Assembly (NCBI RefSeq): GCF_006345805.1
Contig: NW_021827858.1
Location: 1 to 9,645 of the forward strand
DNA from: Octopus sinensis
Taxonomy: Eukaryota
Reading direction: 5' to 3'
Length of the DNA: 9,645 nt
Below the pieces are notes generated by a model. The model was not told where the DNA came from. It saw only the letters and a list, made by a program, of their open reading frames with translations, and ran no database searches. Shown one piece after another: positions 1-9,645 of the stretch. Position numbers and translations under genes: made by a program. Position 1 is the first letter of the stretch; each line of letters begins with the position of its first letter.

Positions 1-232
1 AAAGGAAAGAGGTGAGGAGAGAAAGAAAGGAAGAAGTAAGGAATGAAAGAAAGTACGTTAGGATCACACGAAGTAGGTGCAGTAAGGGTTTGCATGATAA
101 AGGTGCAGTAAGGAACAGTCTTGGGGGCTGAAAAAAATACAATGAAATCGAAGGATTCCATTCCCCCAGTTTTCAATTGATCTTCGTTTGAGGCATGGCC
201 AGAGCAGCAAAGACGCGCCACTGGAGATTTGG

Positions 233-275
233 ACCACCACCACCACCACCATTACTACTACTACTACTACTACTA

Positions 276-322
<47 letters not shown>
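233..322. repeat. Compound trinucleotide microsatellite (ACC)n-(TAC)n
   Basis: accaccacc... at 233-250 then tactactac... to 322, with one interruption (tactatactac). Explains the poly-H/Y/T/V ORFs 64..252, 195..386 and 229..456. Confidence 0.97.
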
Positions 323-494
323 TATTGTATTATATAAGCGTAGATATATTGTACTTAAAACAACTACAAAGGCAAGAAAGAGGTGATGATCACGTTTGGA
401 GAGAGGCCTGCTTGATCAGATCTGACCAAACGAAAACCTGCATGGAGGGTCGTTAGACGAGAACGAGAGGAAAATAGTGAACGCTGGGAGAAAT

Positions 495-733
495 ATTTTT
501 TTGAAAAGAGAAAAGATAGAAGAGAGAGAGAGAGAAAAGGAAAAGAAAGACGGTTATGTGAGGAAGAGAAAGATGGACGATGGTTACGTGTGAGCAACGA
601 GGGAGAGAGAGAAAAAGAGAAAGATGAAGAGAGTGAGAGAAAAGGCGGGAGACGGGAGAGAGAGGAAGATAGAAAACGGTGAAGGAAGGAGGGGAGAAAA
701 AGGGAATTAGAGAAGGATGGAGGAAGAAAACAG
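495..733. repeat. Purine-rich (GA/GAA/GGA) low-complexity tract
   Basis: Plus strand is almost entirely A/G. Degenerate (GA)n runs. Confidence 0.85.
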
Positions 734-869
<136 letters not shown>

Positions 870-1204
870 GGAGTAAGACGTTCAAAATCTCTACCTCACT
901 GTGAATTAATGATCTGTCGTGTAATTGGAATATTTAATAATAATAATAAAAGGAGTTTGTAAAATATGTTAAGATTGGAATTTTGAAGTATTTTCTAAAG
1001 AGTGCAGACTTTAATAATTGATTTCTTTTAGTAATTCAAACTAATTAATATGCAAATTTCTTAATTGGAGTATAGATATTTTTACTGAAAATTAAATTTT
1101 ACATACTCTGTTTTGAAAGGTAAGTAGCTTGCGTAAAGTACCGAAACCCATACCCGTATTCTCCGATCATATGATTTTTTATAGGGGTTTAGTGAAAAAT
1201 ACGT

Positions 1205-1290
1205 TACTGGCGTCAATTTGTTTGAGCGAACCTTTGAAGCCGGTGCTCTAGTATGGCCGCAGTCTTAAGACTGAAACAAAATAAGAAGAT
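1205..1290 (+). mobile_element. SINE family A, isolated 3' end fragment
   Basis: ggtgctctagtatggccgcagtcttaagactgaaacaa matches the 3' end of the copy at 1787-1827 (ggtgccctagcatggccgcagtataatgactgaaacaa). Confidence 0.8.
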
Positions 1291-1322
1291 ACAAGACAAA
1301 AAGATAGAAAGATTGCCATACA

Positions 1323-1526
1323 AGCGCAGAAGTAGCTATGTGGTAAGAAGCTTGCTGTTCAACCACATGGTTACGGGTTCAGTCCCACTGCGTGACATCT
1401 TGAGCATATGTCTTCTTCTATAGACCCGGGCTGACCAGACCCATGTGAGTGGATTACGTAGCCGGAAACTGAAAGAAGCCCGTCGTATACATACATACAT
1501 TCATACATACATAATATAATATTATG

Positions 1527-1607
<81 letters not shown>

Positions 1608-1827
1608 GTGTGTGTGTGTGTGTGTGTGCGTGTGATATGTGTGTGTGTATGTGTGTGTGTCTTTGTGTCTGTGTTTGTCTCCCACCAACACTTGACGTTC
1701 GACAAAAGACCCCGATAGAATATATACCAAACTTGAAAACAGTGGGGATCAATTCATTCGATTCATACGACTACAGTTCTTCATGGTGGTGCCCTAGCAT
1801 GGCCGCAGTATAATGACTGAAACAAGG
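1323..1827 (+). mobile_element. tRNA-derived SINE family A (octopus-type), near full length, with internal microsatellite
   Basis: A-box-like TAGCTATGTGGTAAG (1333-1347) and B-box-like GGTTCAGTCCC (1376-1386). Body and 3' end align with the reverse complement of 7117-7488. Resembles octopus tRNA-derived SINEs (OK/OR1/OR2 group), but the exact family cannot be assigned without Dfam/Repbase. Confidence 0.88.
1485..1660. repeat. (ATAC)n-(TA)n-(TG)n compound microsatellite inside SINE A
   Basis: Direct reading. It lies between SINE anchors gcccgtc (1478-1484) and gtctttg (1659-1665). Confidence 0.95.
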
Positions 1828-1896
1828 AAGCGGTGAAAGATCCGGGTATACAGAAGGGAATATAATGGTTTCCGTTTCCAATAATAATGGTTTCTC

Positions 1897-2295
1897 AGAG
1901 CAGCGAACTGGCAGAATCGTTAGCACACCGGGCGAAATGCTTAGCGGTGTTTCGTCTTTCTTTACGTTCTGAGTTCAAATTCCACCGAGATCGACTTTAG
2001 CTTTCATCCTTTCTGGGTCGATAAATTCAGTACCGGTTGCGTACTGGGGTCGATTCAATCGACTTAATCCGTTTGCCTGTCCTTGCTTGTCCCCTCTATA
2101 TTTAGCCCCTTGTGGGTAGAAAAGAAATAGTATTTCGTGTGTCTTTACGTTCTGAGTTCAAATTCCGCCGAGGTCGACTTTGCCTTTCATCCATTCGGGG
2201 TCGATAAATTAAGTACCAGTTACGCACTGGGGTCGATGTAATCGACTGGGCCCACCCCAAAATTGCTGGCCTTGTGCCTAGAGTAGAAAAGAATG
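1897..2295 (+). mobile_element. tRNA-derived SINE family B, head-to-tail dimer flanked by a TSD
   Basis: A-box-like TGGCAGAATCGTTAG (1909-1923). B-box GTTCAAATTCC at 1973-1983 and again at 2156-2166. Unit 2 (2130-2295) repeats unit 1 from the mid-head. TSD ataatggtttctc (1884-1896) / ataatagtttctc (2296-2308). Inverted copy at 9362-9645. Confidence 0.9.
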
Positions 2296-2689
2296 ATAAT
2301 AGTTTCTCGTATTTAATAGAGGTACATGATGAAAACAACAGTGATGTTCTTGAATTAAGATGTCTTCCAGAATACTTTTAAAGCAAAAGAGATAGGAGAT
2401 GTGGAAAGAAATTTCTGGATCATTTTGATATGTTGTATATAATGTAAAAATATTCACGATTTTATTCTCAAAAGCAATCTGGACATAAGTTGGGGTCTGA
2501 TCAGCCCCAACTGGGTCACCTGGAGGGGAGGGTGTATGATGTTGAAAAACCAGAAACACCCGGTGATACCGGGCACATCACTGAAGATGTATCCAGATGC
2601 ATCAGTCATTGATGTATGTACACGACAATGTAATCATTTTTTATGAAAACAATTTAATTGAATCAGTTGAGATATATAGATTTATAGAT

Positions 2690-2820
2690 AGACAGATAGA
2701 GAGAAAGAGAGAGTATGAAAGTGAGAGAGAGAGAGTATGAAAGTGAGAGAGCATTATAAGGAAAGAAAGTGGGGATAAGAGTGAGAGAGAAAATGTTATA
2801 AGGATAAAGAAAAAGTAAAA
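2690..2820. repeat. Purine-rich tract with a 22-bp tandem duplication
   Basis: gagagagtatgaaagtgagaga at 2707-2728 and 2729-2750, followed by degenerate units. Confidence 0.8.
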
Positions 2821-2867
2821 CTGTTTTTTTCAGGAAATTCCTTGATTTACGCTTATAATTGTGCTGG

Positions 2868-3113
2868 TGGACCCATGAGGCCGGACTTTAAACAGGTTTC
2901 TATGACCCCATCCCACCTGGACAAGACGCCAGTCCGGCATAGAGTTAACTTCCCAGTTACTGACGGAACTCATTTTAGAACTGAGCACGAAGGAGCAACG
3001 TGAAATGAAGTGTTTTTGCTCAAGGACACAATGCCCCGACCGGTCCTGGAGTCAATACCGTGATTTAGCGATCGTCAGGGCAAAGGCCTAAGCTCTAGGC
3101 CACGCGCCTCCAC
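2868..3113 (-). mobile_element. tRNA-derived SINE family C (CORE-like central domain), diverged copy
   Basis: The reverse complement (gtggaggcgcgtggcctag...gtgtccttgagcaaaaacacttcatttcacgttgctcc...ggactggcgtcttgtccag...tagaaacc) aligns colinearly with 3924-4170. Confidence 0.85.
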
Positions 3114-3157
3114 GAAAGTCACTTGAAATAATATAAAATAATGTATATATACATATA

Positions 3158-3348
3158 CAGTAATCCCTCGACTATCGCAGGTGTTACGTTCCCAAAACTC
3201 CATTGCGATAGGTGAAAATCTGAGAAATAGAAACAGTACCGGGCTGTATATATTTTAAAATCATTTTTATAATTTGTATATGTTTATTTTATTATAAATG
3301 CAAAACAAACCACACTCTCACCTCCCGAGTTCCGTTTTCCTTACAGTA
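3158..3348 (+). mobile_element. Tc1/mariner Tigger(pogo)-like DNA transposon, left end
   Basis: TA (3156-3157) followed by CAGTAATCCCTCG, typical of Tigger-type TIRs. Subterminal inverted repeat ctatcgca (3172-3179) / tgcgatag (3204-3211). No clear right TIR, and the 3' boundary is approximate. Confidence 0.65.
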
Positions 3349-3435
3349 TGTGCGATTCTTTGTTTACCCATCTACATATATACGTGTTTATATATACATA
3401 CAACCACGTATATACATACATAAATACAAACATAC

Positions 3436-3477
<42 letters not shown>

Positions 3478-3610
3478 GACACATATATGCATACGGCATA
3501 TACACTCAACCCATACAACCGTTGACATACCAATATAGAGTGTGATGTACACATACTTGCATATACATACACACGTAGATAAACACATATGTACATACAT
3601 ATGCACATAC
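3349..3610. repeat. TA/CA-rich low-complexity tract including (TA)n-(GA)n
   Basis: (TA)n ~3436-3456 joined to (GA)n ~3456-3476, surrounded by degenerate (TACA)n. Confidence 0.9.
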
Positions 3611-3923
3611 TCCTAGCGGCATGTACCTGCGTAAGAAAACGAAACCTGGACTTCCGGCTGCATTAGTGTGTGCATCAGTCGGCTCCACTAATGGCGGCAT
3701 TTAAGTGCACGGGTCGGTCTTTGTATGTGAGTGGAGGGATTCCACTTGTCTTTATCAGTCTGAGCGCACGAGCTAATGATTACAGTAGGTACAGCACGAG
3801 TTAGTGTGTGTGAGCGTATGCATGTATGGACGTATGGATGAATGTAAAGGTGAGTCTATGACGTATGTAGTGACGCAGGTATTATGTAAACATGTTTGTG
3901 CACCTGTTTACATGTATATATAC

Positions 3924-4183
3924 GTGGAGGAGCGTGGCTTAGTGGTTAGGGTGTCAGCATCATGATCGTAAGATTGTGGTTTCGTTTCATGGACCGAGCG
4001 ACGCGTTTTGTTTTTGAGCAAAACACTTCATTTCACTTTGCTCCAGTCCACTCAGCTGGCAAAAATGAGTAACGCTGCGATGGACTGGCGTCCCGTCCAG
4101 CTGGGGGAGCATATACGCCGTAGAAACCGGGAAACCGGGCCCATGAGCCTGGCTAGGCTTTAAAAAGGGCGCGTTTATTATTA
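3924..4183 (+). mobile_element. tRNA-derived SINE family C (CORE-like central domain)
   Basis: A-box TGGCTTAGTGGTTAG (3935-3949), B-box-like GGTTTCGTTTC (3978-3988), central ttgagcaaaacacttcatttcactttgctccagtccactcagctg, and a (TTA)/(TA) tail. Second copy inverted at 2868-3113. Confidence 0.85.
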
Positions 4184-4208
4184 TATATATATATACATAT
4201 ATATATAT

Positions 4209-4239
4209 AAGCACAGGCGTGGTTGTGTGGTTAGAAGCT
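4209..4239 (+). mobile_element. SINE family A head, short 5' fragment
   Basis: aagcacaggcgtggttgtgtggttagaagct resembles aagcgcagaagtagctatgtggtaagaagct (1322-1352). The match is only 31 bp. Confidence 0.55.
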
Positions 4240-4262
4240 AAGTGCATAAACACCATTGATAG

Positions 4263-5050
4263 GTGAACATTTCCCGATTTGAAGCTAACGTATTTTCCCA
4301 TGTGATTGACTGCTTGGAGGATCTTGATTTAAATGTTGAGGAAATCCCCTTGGAAGGATTTCGGAGAATTCTGAAAAAAATCAGGAAATAATAAAACTGT
4401 TGGAATAGATGATAGCTTTGATGAATTTGTTAGATAGAAAAGGGTAGCGGAACCATACTTCAGCATTTACCTAAAATTCCTGTCTGATGTGTCCTAACAT
4501 TGGCGTCAAAACCTGATCTTTACGACCATAGGGGATACCACTTTCTGTGAGATTGGTCATTTTGATTACTTCCACCAAGTGCAGGAGACCATCACCTCCT
4601 ACAACCAGCTGTTTGACCCGCCGTCCAAGAATTTAGACCTGGAGATCTCCATTTCCAGCGACTTCGAGGGTCACCTCCCAGTCGTGTCGGGCGTCAACGA
4701 AGAGCCCTCAACAACAACAAGACGACCAAAGTTTTGTTTTCTTCCAAGGTCCGGGGTCTCCTACTCCTAAGCCCTAGACCATCACCTAATCACCCTTACC
4801 CGTCTTGTTGCTTAACAACAACAACAGCTGTTTTCCCCCGCTAGAAATGGTCCAAGACAAGGGGCTGGAAGTTAACCCAAGAAACCAAGCAACAATTCTC
4901 GTAAATTGTTGTTTTAATGTCGTTGAGAGCAGGGTATGATATTGGTCCAAGAAATTTCCAAACAGGTGACTCTATCAGAACTCTCCATTCCTTGAGAGGA
5001 CCAAACTAAGGTGACCAACGAGAAGAAGAGAACAAAATATAATTGAGTCG
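4263..5050 (+). pseudogene. Heavily decayed non-LTR retrotransposon ORF2 remnant, most parsimoniously the APE endonuclease plus linker
   Basis: With frameshifts and stops it reads ...IPLEGFRRILKK/SGNNKTVG...EPYFSIYLKF...NLIFTT...HFDYFHQVQETITS...DLEISISSDFEGH (GDFNxH-like, 4657-4674)...LDHHLIT (SDH-like, ~4774-4794)...TRGWKLTQETK. Motif order fits an APE domain, but the spacing implies deletions. 4320-4550 can alternatively be read as an RT N-terminus. Clade unassigned. Confidence 0.5.
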
Positions 5051-5104
5051 GGAATAGTAAACCGAAACAACCGAGTTTGAAGAAGGTATGAACTCACTGT
5101 GAAT

Positions 5105-5189
5105 ACAGTGGATGGCACTCACCTAAGGTCCCACGAAGTGAAACTGAACCCCCAACCTTGTGGTTAGGAAGCGAACTTCTTAAATGCAC
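5105..5189 (-). mobile_element. SINE family A, 5' fragment
   Basis: The reverse complement aagaagttcgcttcctaaccacaaggttgggggttcagtttcacttcgtgggaccttaggtgagtg aligns with 1345-1410. Confidence 0.8.
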
Positions 5190-5267
5190 AATTCTATATG
5201 AGTCTTTGTGCGGATGTTTCGCCAGTGTACACTGACAAATAATTGAAACATCGGCGGAAAATAAATG

Positions 5268-5333
5268 GCCTCTGCTGCTGAAGAGGAAGTAACCACTCCG
5301 AAATGCATGCATGCCACCGTCCAGTTAGAGGGC
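5268..5333 (+). ncRNA. Type I hammerhead ribozyme
   Basis: CUGAAGA (5278-5284). Helix II GGA(A)GU-aacc-ACUCC (5285-5299) with G10.1-C11.1. GAAA (5300-5303). GUC cleavage triplet (5319-5321). Helix I 5268-5277 pairs with 5322-5333 (4 bp, U bulge, 5 bp). Short helix III (A-U, U.G, G-C). Confidence 0.82.
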
Positions 5334-5390
5334 TCTGTGAGCTGACTCGCTGTGCTTACACCTTTCTGTCTACAGCGAGAAAGTCTCCCC

Positions 5391-5560
5391 ATGACAAAAT
5401 ACACTGAATGTCTTTCTTACGAGTTCGAATATGCCTCAAGAATATTTGAACTAGTAAAAAGTTTTATTTGTCACGGCTTAGCGATTTCAACCCGTATAAA
5501 AAAAGATGGTTCTATCGTAAATACAAAGAGCTAGTTATTGGTCAGTTTTTGACTAATTAG
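5391..5560 (+). pseudogene. Frameshifted ORF fragment MTKYTECLSYEFEYASRIFELVK / KFYLSRLSDFNPYKKRWFYRKYKELVIGQFLTN*, possible PLE ORF N-terminus
   Basis: ATG at 5391. Restoring one A in the A5 run (5456-5460) joins it to a 33-codon open frame ending TAG 5558-5560. The product is not identified. Confidence 0.35.
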
Positions 5561-5659
5561 ACACCTTTAACCAAACGAGGCTACTTCTCACTAAATATAA
5601 CAGTATATAATGTGAGTTACGAACTGATGGGAGTATGTTGTTAAGTGCAGCCGGGTTCG

Positions 5660-6930
5660 ATTCTAGCAAAGAGTTATTATTGTTGGAGACATATCCGGGT
5701 GTAGGAAGTTGGTCTGGGATTTTTTGAAGAGATTTGTCCAGTGAACTTTTGAATTTTATGGGATCCGTTTCCGTTTTGACGTATTTTGGTGTGGTATTAA
5801 AGAGAACTGAACCGGTTGAGGTAAAGTAGTTGTTGCTATGAGTTCGATTTTTGTATTGAGCGGATACCACGGGGGCCAAGTCTTGGACGGATTTTATAAT
5901 TGATGCCAACATCATTTGTGCAATATTGATGGAATATTTTCCACATCACCCAAATGATGTAACGCTCCAGGCGGCGTTGGAGAGAGTAGAGGCTGAGTTG
6001 TTTTAGTCGACCCCAATAATCAATGCCTCTCATACCGTCTTTCTTGCTATTGACCTCTGGAGTGCTTCCACTTTCATAATGAGTTGCTTCGTATGGTCGG
6101 GCAAAAACTAGAGTAGAGAGGGATGATAATGTGGGCATCTCTAGACTGGAAAGTTCTCAGAATCCAGGAGCACATCTTGTGGGTCAAGTCAACCTTGCTG
6201 TTTACGTAGGAACTCCAGCTTAGATTCTTATCAACAATTACTCCAAGGTCTCTGGTGTTGTTGGATGACAGTAGGGAGTCGCCCGAGGGAAAGAGCATAG
6301 GGTAATTTCAGAGTCTCCTCTTTTCCAAAGTGGATAAAATCAAACTTATCTTCATTTAGAAGCATATTGTTCTTTGGACAACAGCCAACAGATCCAACTG
6401 AAAGCATGTTCAGTCTCGCATACCGTTTATGGCTGTAAAGATTTTCAATGTGGAATGTTTGATGACATCTACTATGTCGTTGATGTAGATAATAATATAA
6501 TATAATAATAATAATTATGTACAGTGCTCAGGTGCACTACAACTCATCTAAAGTGTATATATAATCAGGTGTAGTTTCGGCGGATTTCGGAAAGCATGAG
6601 GGCCTTAAAGGATGCAGTGTCATGGCAGTCAACAACTGACGCAGGCAGTTTATTCCATGCTTCAGCAACTCTGAGCGTGAAAAAATGTTTCCGAAAGTCA
6701 TGGGAAATGTGTTGTTTTCTGACTTTGTAGGCCTGTCCACGTGTATTAGACACATGGAGATCAAAAAGGTGTTCAGTGTTGTTGTTGGTGAGGTGGTTGA
6801 TAACTTTGTGGGTGTTTACCAAGTCCGTCGCCAGACGCCGGAGCTGATAATGAAGAGGAGTGGGCCCAACACGGTGCCTTGTGGGACACCACAACTGACT
6901 TTGGCTGAGCTGGATCGTATTCCCTCAATA
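5660..6930 (-). mobile_element. CR1-group LINE (copy A), 5'-truncated, ORF2 RT plus C-terminal region, dead, interrupted by LINE B
   Basis: Fragments in order: IEGIRSSSAKVSCGVPQGTVLGPLLFII | YINDIVDVIKHSTLKIF ... QLDLLAVVQ ... NNMLLNEDKF ... RDLGVIVDKNLSW ... WILRTF ... DYWGRLKQLSLYSLQRRLERY ... FKSSLDKSLQKIPDQLPTPGY. Multiple frameshifts, and the (F/Y)ADD motif is missing. Confidence 0.92.
6494..6845 (-). mobile_element. CR1-group LINE (copy B), 3' end only: ORF2 C-terminus, 3' UTR and (TTA)n tail, nested in LINE A
   Basis: LRRLATDLVNTHKVINHL...TRGQAYKVRK...RKHFFTLRVAEAWNKLPASVVDC...FK, with the stop at 6565-6567. Tail at 6494-6518. Flanked by gataat at 6488-6493 and 6846-6851. Confidence 0.92.
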
Positions 6931-6954
6931 CACACACACACACACACACACACA
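6931..6954. repeat. (CA)12 microsatellite at the 5' truncation point of LINE A
   Basis: Direct reading. Confidence 0.95.
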
Positions 6955-6961
6955 TAGGTAA

Positions 6962-7004
6962 GGGTTAGCAGCAGAAAGGGCATCCGGATGTAAAACAATG
7001 TCTC
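6962..7004 (+). mobile_element. Short fragment of a SINE/LINE-related repeat (GAAGGGCATCC-type motif)
   Basis: gggttagcagcagaaagggcatccggatgtaaaac resembles a motif I recall from metazoan SINE bodies. There is no second copy in the window to confirm it. Confidence 0.3.
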
Positions 7005-7116
7005 GTATATGTACTCGTCAAACCAGACTTTAAAAAAATAAATCAAACGAGTTTTTATATCACCAATAGAAAAGAAATATAAAATTCAACAAGTGATAAA
7101 AAAAAATAGATGAAAA

Positions 7117-7488
7117 CATTAGGCTGCGGCCATGCTGGAGTAGTGCCTTGAAGATAATCGAATGAATCGATCCCATTACTTTTTATTTATTTTTTGTTTG
7201 AACTTGCTCCTTATTCTATCAGTTTCTTCTGTCGAACTGCGCAATGACGGGGACGTAAACACACAAACACCAGCGGTCAAGCGGTGGTGGGGGTACAAGC
7301 CTAGACGCAAAGACTCACAAACATTTCGGACGGGCTTCTTCCAGTTTCCGTCTACCGAATCCACTAACAAGGCTTTGGTCTGAAGGAGGCTACAGTAGAA
7401 GACGCTTATCCAAGACGCCACAAAGTGGGACCGAACCTGGAACTATGTGGCTGGCAAACGAACTTCTTACTACACAGCCATGCTTACG
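7117..7488 (-). mobile_element. tRNA-derived SINE family A, near full length, without microsatellite expansion
   Basis: The reverse complement runs from the head (catggctgtgtagtaagaagttcg...ggttcggtccc) through the body (ggaaactggaagaagcccgtc) to the 3' end (ctccagcatggccgcagcctaatg), colinear with 1323-1827. Confidence 0.88.
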
Positions 7489-7492
7489 TCAG

Positions 7493-7569
7493 ATATATAT
7501 ATATACACATATACACGCATATAAATAAATTGATAGATTAGAGATAGACGGAAAAAAAAAATGTATATA

Positions 7570-7615
<46 letters not shown>

Positions 7616-7647
7616 TATATATATATAAATCTGTAGTTATATATCTG

Positions 7648-7691
<44 letters not shown>

Positions 7692-7781
7692 ATATAGATA
7701 TATATATATATATGTGTCTATATAAAAATGTATATATACATATATATGTATATATATATGTATATAGATATATATATTATA

Positions 7782-7819
<38 letters not shown>

Positions 7820-7835
7820 AATGAATGTTTTTATA
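7493..7835. repeat. Long degenerate (TA)n tract
   Basis: Several perfect (TA)n runs (for example 7573-7610, 7649-7678, 7787-7817). Confidence 0.95.
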
Positions 7836-7940
7836 TATAATGAACGTGAAATACAGGAAGGGACGAACACGGAACACAGACAAATCATTCGAAGCCTTCA
7901 TCTTCAGTCAGACACCGAATCATCATAGCAAATTTCGGCT

Positions 7941-8087
7941 ATATATATATTATATAATATATATATATATATATACATACATATCTATATAATTATATCG
8001 ACTAAAGATTGACCCAGCCATGTCTAAATTAATAGCATTACATGCATATACCTATATATGTTTATATATATATATATATATATATAT
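7941..8087. repeat. (TA)n-rich tract
   Basis: (TA)n runs at 7941-7976 and 8063-8087 with a short intervening sequence. Confidence 0.85.
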
Positions 8088-8143
8088 CTTTTATCGTTAT
8101 TTTTAGTTGTTTCAGCCAGCAGACTGTGGCCAAGCTGGGGCAC
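8088..8143 (-). mobile_element. SINE family A, isolated 3' end fragment
   Basis: The reverse complement gtgccccagcttggccacagtctgctggctgaaacaactaaaaataacgataaaag matches the family A 3' end. Confidence 0.75.
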
Positions 8144-8184
8144 ATGTACATATATATCTTAATCTGTCTAGATGCGTTTGTACG

Positions 8185-8205
8185 CGTGTGTGCATGAGTG
8201 TATAT

Positions 8206-8243
<38 letters not shown>
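8185..8243. repeat. (TG)n microsatellite
   Basis: Perfect (TG)n ~8208-8243 with a degenerate 5' extension. Confidence 0.95.
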
Positions 8244-8245
<2 letters not shown>

Positions 8246-8464
8246 AGTTATATAGACTTTCTGTTGTAAATAAATAAATGTGCCGAAAACCCCATGAATC
8301 TGCCAACAGCCGTGTGGCTGGATTAAGACAAGCGTATAGCGTTTAACGGGTGCAGGGTGGACGCATGATTTACAATATGTCTGGGTAGATTTCGGATGGG
8401 AGGAGGAGATGGTACCTCACTGAAATATGCCGTCAACGTGAGTTGCGGGTGGCAGCGAGAGGGG

Positions 8465-8620
8465 CCGAAAAAAAGGTAGAAAGAAAGAAAGAAGGAAAGG
8501 TGCTATGATTTATATCGGCGCTGTAGGGGAGAAGAGAGAGGAGGAGGGGGAGGAGCGTTGGGGTGAGGAAAGTAGGAGAGTGAGGGAGTGGAGAGAATGT
8601 GGTAGGCGTGGGGGAAAATG
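8465..8620. repeat. Purine/G-rich low-complexity tract
   Basis: (GAAA)n, (GA)n, (GGA)n and several G-runs. Confidence 0.75.
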
Positions 8621-8639
8621 AGAGTATGACGTATGAGCG

Positions 8640-8877
8640 CCCCCCACACACACGCCCACCACACACACAGGCGCGTATCTATGTAGGTATATGCAAATAT
8701 ATATATATGTATGTATGTATGCACGTGTGTGTGTGTATGTGTGTGTGCGCGTGTGTGATTGTGTGTCTATATCTTTATATACATACATGTATATAAACAT
8801 ACGCACATATACATATTTATATTTATATTTCTCTGTATATATGTATGTGTATACGTATATCTGTACCTATACCTCTA

Positions 8878-8973
<96 letters not shown>

Positions 8974-9170
8974 TGACATACACACATACATCTATGCATA
9001 CACACATAATCGAAAAAAACGCATTTCGTTTTGGGTAGAAAGTTTTTATTGTTCGAAAGAACAAACTCTGTCGGTCACACACACACACACACCTACATAT
9101 ACATACACACACAGAGACACACACGCACACACATACGGACACACATATGTATACGTGTGAGTGTGTTTGA
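8640..9170. repeat. Compound microsatellite region: (CA)/(TG)/(TA) tracts and (GTCT)n-(ATCT)n
   Basis: (GTCT)n 8881-8903 grades into (ATCT)n ~8905-8971. (CA)n ~9075-9140. Confidence 0.92.
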
Positions 9171-9361
9171 GTCACTACACGTTATATATATACATAGAGA
9201 GGCAACAAGCGCCTACACGTATCCTATAGACAGACGTGTGTGAAGCGGACTTGGTCGAAAGGAATGAACCAGACCCACGCATTGACATGCAGACACATAC
9301 TTCTAGAGTCACATGATTTGACTTAAATGCACACACGCATGGACAGAACAACACATTATTT

Positions 9362-9645
9362 TGTTTTTTTCTGCTCTAGGCACAAGGCCAGCAATTTTGG
9401 GGGAGGTGGTGCGTCGATTAGATCGACCCCCAGTGTGCAACTGGTACTTAATTTATCGACCCCGAAAGTATGAAAGGCAAAGTCGACCTCGGCGAGATTT
9501 GAACTCAGAACGTAAAGACACACGAAATACCTAATTCTTTACTACCCACAAGGGGCTGAACACGAGAGGACAAACAAGGACAGACAAACGGATAAGTCGG
9601 TTATATCGACCCCAGTGCGTAACTGGTACTTATTTAATCGACCCC
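9362..9645 (-). mobile_element. tRNA-derived SINE family B dimer, running off the window end
   Basis: The reverse complement of 9362-9530 aligns with 2130-2295, and 9531-9645 aligns with ~2015-2130. The internal junction is the same as in the copy at 1897-2295. Confidence 0.9.

Follow-up and report, generated by a model that had tools for sequence, protein, structure and literature searches.

A 66-nt motif on the forward strand of an Octopus sinensis contig (NW_021827858.1) spells out every conserved core nucleotide of a type I hammerhead ribozyme, and it is regarded here, at about even confidence, as an orphan hammerhead look-alike, being most likely neither a working ribozyme nor a member of a described family. 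Either a look-alike or a dead relic is judged more probable than a functional ribozyme. The window, meaning the whole stretch of DNA that was analysed, comprises positions 1 to 9,645 of the contig, with the motif at 5268-5333. The first-pass annotation of the window, made from the letters alone, had described a complete type I hammerhead at this site. That description holds at the level of the consensus, but not at that of the fold: putative helix III comes out at +3.0 kcal/mol, the hammerhead fold is unfavoured, and no Rfam hammerhead covariance model matches the motif.

By direct reading of the sequence, all of the cited letters were located at 5268-5333 (+), 66 nt in all, in the order GCCUCUGCUG / CUGAAGA / GGAAGUAACCACUCC / GAAA / UGCAUGCAUGCCACCG / UC / CAGUUAGAGGGC. 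The parts of the motif, preceded by the segment in which it lies, are as follows.

5200-5480, no strand assigned: unclassified hairpin-rich segment with the motif inside, by its fold z-scores
5268-5277 (+): putative helix I 5' strand GCCUCUGCUG, pairing with 5322-5333
5278-5284 (+): core box C3-U4-G5-A6-A7-G8-A9 (CUGAAGA), by direct reading
5285-5299 (+): putative helix II and loop 2, GGA-A-GU-AACC-AC-UCC, with G10.1-C11.1 closing (three pairs, a bulge, and two pairs)
5300-5303 (+): core box G12-A13-A14-A15.1 (GAAA), by direct reading
5304-5319 (+): putative helix III and loop 3, with U15.2.G16.2, a G-C pair, and the 12-nt loop CAUGCAUGCCAC carrying (UGCA)n palindromes
5320-5321 (+): U16.1 and C17, by direct reading
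5322-5333 (+): putative helix I 3' strand CAGUUAGAGGGC, pairing with 5268-5277

The conserved hammerhead core (C3 U4 G5 A6 N7 G8 A9, G12 A13 A14, A15.1-U16.1, and H17) is complete in the candidate. The annotation was thus right that all core nucleotides are present, ordered, and nested at the coordinates it gave, as it was about the closure of helix II by G10.1-C11.1 and the GUC cleavage triplet, both of which were confirmed by direct reading. Going by the hammerhead consensus, cleavage is predicted between 5321 and 5322. Putative helix I consists of ten pairs, including one G.U, interrupted by the single-base bulges U5326 and G5330. Putative helix II is made of G5285-C5299, G5286-C5298, and A5287-U5297, followed by a bulged A5288 and then by G5289-C5296 and U5290-A5295 around an AACC loop, while putative helix III is limited to A5303-U5320, U5304.G5319, and G5305-C5318, closing the 12-nt loop. 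The motif had also been singled out as the only intact core in the window, and this was upheld when both strands were scanned: among the four CUGANGA sites found, only the one at 5278 passes the helix-aware descriptor, being the only one where the CUGANGA box is followed by GAAA, UH, and correctly nested helices II, III, and I.

The fold energies do not favour the hammerhead. With -6.8 kcal/mol against -13.6 kcal/mol for the MFE structure, the hammerhead fold is 6.8 kcal/mol worse and has an ensemble probability of 5 x 10^-7; the 66-mer as a whole is no more stable than shuffled versions of itself (z = +0.89). The three helices are very unequal in strength. The flanking 12- and 14-nt strands of helix I (5266-5277 with 5322-5335) form a duplex of -13.2 kcal/mol, helix II reaches -2.3 kcal/mol with pair probabilities of 0.35-0.66 and is the sole hammerhead helix kept in the MFE fold, and helix III, taken as a monomer, amounts to the above +3.0 kcal/mol with pair probabilities of 0.001-0.002. 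Competing structures appear as soon as the neighbouring sequence is included. In a 91-nt fold with flanks, CCUCU (5269-5273) can pair instead with AGAGG (5282-5286) in the core. In the 281-nt context, the partners are 5200-5207 for 5328-5335 and 5212-5216 for 5318-5322, and the two helix I strands, together with the cleavage site, are sequestered in other stems. An accessible active fold was found in none of the 66-, 91-, and 281-nt foldings. If this strand is transcribed, its RNA would be expected to adopt such alternative folds, with the helix I strands and cleavage site paired elsewhere, CCUCU engaged with AGAGG inside the core, and a helix III lacking the strength to keep A15.1-U16.1 and C17 in position. 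A dimeric hammerhead would call for a second copy nearby, and this is absent.

The U15.2.G16.2 wobble had been attributed to the deamination of a former CpG, with T5304 lying in a TpG. The dinucleotide is indeed as described, G5305 being the next base. As a rescue of the motif, however, the proposal was discarded: the T5304C variant leaves helix III unstable at +1.2 kcal/mol, its hammerhead fold reaching only -8.6 kcal/mol when the MFE is -13.5 kcal/mol, and the local CpG depletion is mild (observed/expected 0.69-0.93). CpG deamination at T5304 is thus possible but not evidenced. The other conceivable remedy is dimerisation, suggested by GCAUGC (5309-5314), which occupies the exact centre of the segment between A15.1 and U16.1. 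An in-register trans helix III would have -8.6 kcal/mol and is feasible, but it is outcompeted by an off-register 10-bp palindrome, GCAUGCAUGC, at -18.3 kcal/mol, so that the most stable dimer register lies 2 nt off the catalytic one; with the partner copy also absent from the window, the dimeric hammerhead was set aside. Since the UGCA repeats give a palindromic centre every 2 nt, the centring of GCAUGC is about a one-in-two coincidence.

A search with the Rfam hammerhead covariance models, which the annotation had proposed as a check, returned nothing at gathering score or at E<=10 for the candidate. No Rfam family reached its gathering score anywhere in the window, and no Rfam hammerhead family was matched at E<=10 with permissive filters in the 301 nt or the 78 nt surrounding the motif. 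In the 78-nt search, the lowest-scoring listed match of any family had 8.4 bits, and the candidate scores below about 8 bits against RF00163, for which the gathering score is 34. Partial matches to snoU82P (14.5 bits), snR75, ST7-AS1_2, and HOTAIRM1_3 were rejected as chance because they are short, unstructured, and far below gathering score.

The weight of this result was gauged on Penelope-like elements (PLEs). Control PLEs were retrieved with a self-composed PLE RT/endonuclease consensus serving as a search probe only, which matched 6045 proteins; the Pfam domains of the best 120 listed were PLE-type (RVT_1, HTH_animal, and, in some, GIY-YIG). Head-to-head inverted PLE copies are present in each of the three control loci, L004, L005, and L006, and with a relaxed descriptor, every PLE ORF stop in them was seen to be followed, 110-175 nt downstream, by a minimal hammerhead (min-hammerhead), which makes six (L004 6014-6067 and its inverted partner at ~2707; L005 5993 and 1463; L006 5791 and 2543), one example reading CUGAAGA-A-GAUCUACGGAUC-GAAA-CG-UC. 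The relaxed descriptor recovered six out of six true PLE hammerheads with zero false positives in ~112 kb of real DNA strands, and Rfam at gathering score found none of the six. The curated Rfam thresholds miss the abundant class of PLE min-hammerheads, and given that genuine members are missed, a gathering-level miss on its own is weak evidence. Under the same 78-nt, E<=10 settings as were applied to the candidate, the L004 hammerhead (6020-6059), the only one tested in this way, scored 16.8 bits against Hammerhead_1 (RF00163). Judged by the curated model, the candidate resembles a hammerhead less than the most minimal genuine ones do.

The probability of meeting such a motif by chance was estimated in several ways. 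None of 3000 windows simulated by a Markov-1 model gave any descriptor match. Feature-by-feature thresholds can be avoided by a summed-helix-energy statistic, in which the three helix energies are added (-10.9 kcal/mol for the candidate), and by this measure random sites scoring at least as well occur at 9.5 x 10^-6 per CUGANGA site, or 4 x 10^-5 per window. Real DNA was assessed by means of 12,000 decoy cores matched in composition, for which the window, one locus of O. sinensis, and three further animal loci were scanned. One independent match was obtained in 231,791 sites, a rate of ~4 x 10^-6 per site, which indicates that real sequence behaves like the model. Helix-I-like complementarity by itself is ~4 times commoner in real than in random DNA. 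The Markov and real-DNA decoy tests together put chance matches at about 2-4 x 10^-5 per window. Scaled to a 2.7-Gb genome with ~1.2 million CUGANGA sites, this corresponds to ~5-11 equally good matches expected by chance; the motif is thus significant locally, but not beyond the chance yield of a large genome.

Relatives were sought among proteins, viral contigs, and metagenomes. Five stop-free translations spanning the motif, searched as a concatenate, had no match at E<=10 among 5.8 billion proteins. At the DNA level, the pattern CTGANGAGGAAGNNNNCACTCCGAAA, containing 21 specified bases from the core and helix II, had no match in the viral contigs and two exact matches in the metagenomes, at L002 212-237 and L003 1246-1271. 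Neither was accepted as a relative: both are without helix I, and translation shows what is apparently the 3' end of the same bacterial gene, so that they are taken as chance matches. They illustrate that long partial motif matches arise by chance in large collections. No relative was thus obtained from the protein, viral, and metagenome collections, among which there was no cephalopod genome, and no octopus hammerhead family was found in the literature and supplements searched.

Set against the known metazoan forms, the candidate shares its boxes but little of its architecture. Canonical metazoan type I hammerheads have a helix I of ~6 bp, a helix II of 4 bp, and a helix III of 1-2 bp with a palindromic loop of 2-4 nt, and among the described metazoan forms a helix III may also be missing altogether (PMC4209133, PMC7229834 for the former; PMC4209133 for the latter). 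With these (Schistosoma Sm-alpha, newt satellite 2, and the non-LTR retrozymes; RF00163), the candidate has in common the open helix I topology, the CUGANGA, GAAA, and UH boxes, G10.1-C11.1, and C17, as well as a weak, palindrome-bearing helix III, a feature tied to dimeric action among the known families; metazoan type I hammerheads with their weak helix III and palindromic loops often act as dimers (PMC4209133, PMC7229834). It is unlike them in its bulged 10-pair helix I, bulged 3+2 bp helix II, and 12-nt loop 3. Moreover, canonical type I motifs sit in multi-copy tandem repeats of 150-450 bp, whereas the candidate is single-copy in the window; the head-to-tail hammerhead repeats of ~150-450 bp that characterise non-LTR retrozymes were not found in the window.

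The min-hammerheads of PLE pLTRs likewise share the core boxes, G10.1-C11.1, and C17 with the candidate, and CUGAAGA itself is also used in L004 and L006. They differ from it in having an unpaired nucleotide between A9 and G10.1, where the candidate has G10.1 directly after A9, and in a helix II of 4-6 bp as opposed to 3+2 bp. They also differ in helix III: PLE min-hammerheads run GAAA-NN-UH without any helix III (GAAACGUC in L004 and L006; GAAAGCUU in L005), whereas 16 nt separate A15.1 from U16.1 in the candidate. They also recur in an inverted partner copy 110-175 nt past the ORF stop, while the candidate is without a PLE coding remnant nearby; neither the location of the PLE motifs after an RT/GIY-YIG ORF nor their min-HHR architecture is seen in it. 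A Penelope variant of Drosophila virilis, likewise missed by standard descriptors, is also among the closest known motifs; it has a 2-nt insertion and a 2-bp helix I, in contrast to the 16-nt helix III segment and long helix I of the candidate, and it is found in the pLTR of ~130 nearly identical copies, whereas no other copy of the candidate is known (PMC4209133). Motifs outside any consensus family are set aside by the practice of the field (PMC4209133).

The window is animal DNA of an octopus type, rich in microsatellites and SINEs, with repeats 70-87% identical to those of the O. sinensis contig VCDQ01000580.1 (L001). The segment 5200-5480 stands out by its RNA fold z-scores of -3.97 on the + strand and -3.12 on the - strand; in the other 280-nt tiles of 3520-7159, z lies between -1.8 and +1.6 for 11 of the 12, and reaches -3.3 for 4640-4919. 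Its main hairpins are 5217-5259, 5346-5379 (9-bp stem), and 5392-5473, the last with an 11-bp perfect core, AGTTCGAATAT/ATATTTGAACT. The segment has no match to L001, and the motif is found inside an unmatched interval of ~470 bp that extends from a SINE-like fragment (5104-5182) to a decayed LINE's truncated 3' end (~5655). The first-pass annotation had associated the motif with Penelope-like elements and retrozymes, an affiliation to which the window lends no support: it contains no PLE-like ORF, no Pfam domain was detected in six frames over 3600-5600, and 120 PLE proteins had no tblastn match in it (best E 0.04). Tandem or direct repeats were absent over 4900-5900, as was a second copy of the motif from the 9.6-kb window, and no convincing target-site duplications or terminal inverted repeats were seen. 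The sole candidate, a 10-nt inverted repeat at 5233-5242/5464-5473, was rejected as element termini, being at about chance level in 1 kb.

On the - strand, from ~7046 to ~5655, lies a decayed LINE with ~75% DNA identity to two L001 copies; the O. sinensis protein P0002 is 71% identical to it. The two L001 copies share a further ~100 nt at the end of the 3' UTR, which this LINE lacks. The notion that the motif could lie antisense in its 3' UTR was dismissed, as the homology to the two O. sinensis copies stops at ~5655-5662.

A fortuitous consensus match inside a hairpin-rich, unclassified segment is the reading to which about half of our belief is assigned, and with it we infer a chance origin and an RNA that would not cleave, whereas the sequence itself, the energies, and the missing covariance-model match and hammerhead-element context are directly shown. 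This reading must be reconciled with a match improbable by chance in a single 9.6-kb window (2-4 x 10^-5), with a descriptor that recovered all six PLE hammerheads without false positives in ~112 kb, and with the candidate's G10.1-C11.1, C17, and CUGAAGA, which are the choices of the real PLE hammerheads in L004 and L006. The surrounding 281 nt is also unusually structured (z about -4), and retrozyme RNAs are highly structured. Furthermore, cephalopod hammerheads exist, the genome of the giant squid Architeuthis dux having 235 Rfam Hammerhead_1 hits (PMC6962438). These same observations, namely the improbability of a full core with three nested helices in one window, the highly structured 281-nt segment, and the Hammerhead_1 hits reported in one cephalopod genome (PMC6962438), give some credit to the motif being a solo, decayed remnant of a hammerhead-bearing retroelement, whether a non-LTR retrozyme monomer or a Penelope-like pLTR fragment, which we entertain tentatively as the less probable origin. 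Its loop 3 may then have been expanded, e.g., by slippage of the palindromic UGCA/GCAUGC loop, leaving a motif now inactive, or weakly or dimer-active, a history we hold just as tentatively. Consistent with such an origin are the central position of GCAUGC in the A15.1-U16.1 segment, the trans helix III of -8.6 as against +3.0 kcal/mol for the monomer, and the precedent of metazoan type I motifs with weak palindromic helix III, which act as dimers, and of PLE hammerheads, most of which derive from truncated elements and lie scattered as single motifs (PMC4209133, PMC7229834). A 16-nt helix III segment with a 12-nt loop is, however, unlike the described metazoan forms, whose helix III has 1-2 bp with a 2-4 nt loop or is lacking (PMC4209133), and the PLE-type unpaired nucleotide between A9 and G10.1 is wanting. 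Not even a sub-threshold Rfam hammerhead match was obtained where the control gave 16.8 bits; a PLE coding remnant, a tandem copy, and a partner copy are all absent from the 9.6 kb; and the dimer argument is weakened by a most stable register 2 nt off and a palindrome centring that is about a one-in-two coincidence.

That the motif is instead a complete type I hammerhead, self-cleaving in cis between C5321 and C5322 when transcribed, appears improbable. It does have 13/13 conserved core positions, G10.1-C11.1, the GUC triplet, and three nested putative helices, and in vitro, at high Mg2+, cleavage is possible for minimal three-helix hammerheads whose core is intact. Against this stand the helix III of +3.0 kcal/mol (pair probability ~0.002), still +1.2 in the T5304C form, the 6.8 kcal/mol by which the hammerhead fold falls short of the MFE, the sequestration of the core and of each helix I strand in competing pairings, and the missing hammerhead covariance model match; in addition, published type I hammerheads whose helix III is weak cleave little, if at all, as monomeric single motifs (PMC4209133, PMC7229834). 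A further and rather unlikely proposal is that of a surviving copy of an undescribed cephalopod type I lineage with a palindrome-bearing expanded loop 3, which would cleave only as a dimer or with host factors and would be carried by a structured non-autonomous retroelement of ~280 nt (5200-5480) that Rfam models miss.

Were the ribozyme real, a cephalopod branch with an unusual helix III would join the animal hammerhead-bearing retroelements, and a family missed by the current Rfam models would be indicated. Hammerheads are known across metazoans in thousands of copies. The gain would be incremental even then, because metazoan hammerheads are already abundant, including the 235 giant squid hits (PMC6962438). 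As it stands, the case is chiefly of methodological value: raw sequence is enough for reading out a complete hammerhead consensus, one that is rare per window and yet is expected several times by chance genome-wide. Given such chance consensus matches on the one hand and the real PLE min-hammerheads missed by Rfam on the other, neither a consensus match nor a covariance model miss is decisive without evidence of a family or of cleavage.

Several repeats of the window deserve mention in their own right. Relative to L001, the decayed LINE has an insertion of ~350 nt at ~6494-6845, which, by motif reading, encodes another LINE-type C-terminal fragment (ORF 6565-6894). SINE-like units spaced ~183 nt apart form a direct pair (1946-2064 and 2130-2247) and, at the other end of the window, an inverted pair (9428-9531 and 9610-9645) with 86-94% complementarity; the same unit is repeated four to five times in a short tandem array at O. 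sinensis L001 14348-15001, which suggests a tandemly amplifying SINE-derived repeat. A second SINE-like repeat makes up a 150-nt inverted pair, 1335-1484/7329-7478, 5.8 kb apart and 74% complementary, and it is to this repeat that the fragment 5104-5182, directly upstream of the motif-bearing segment, is related.
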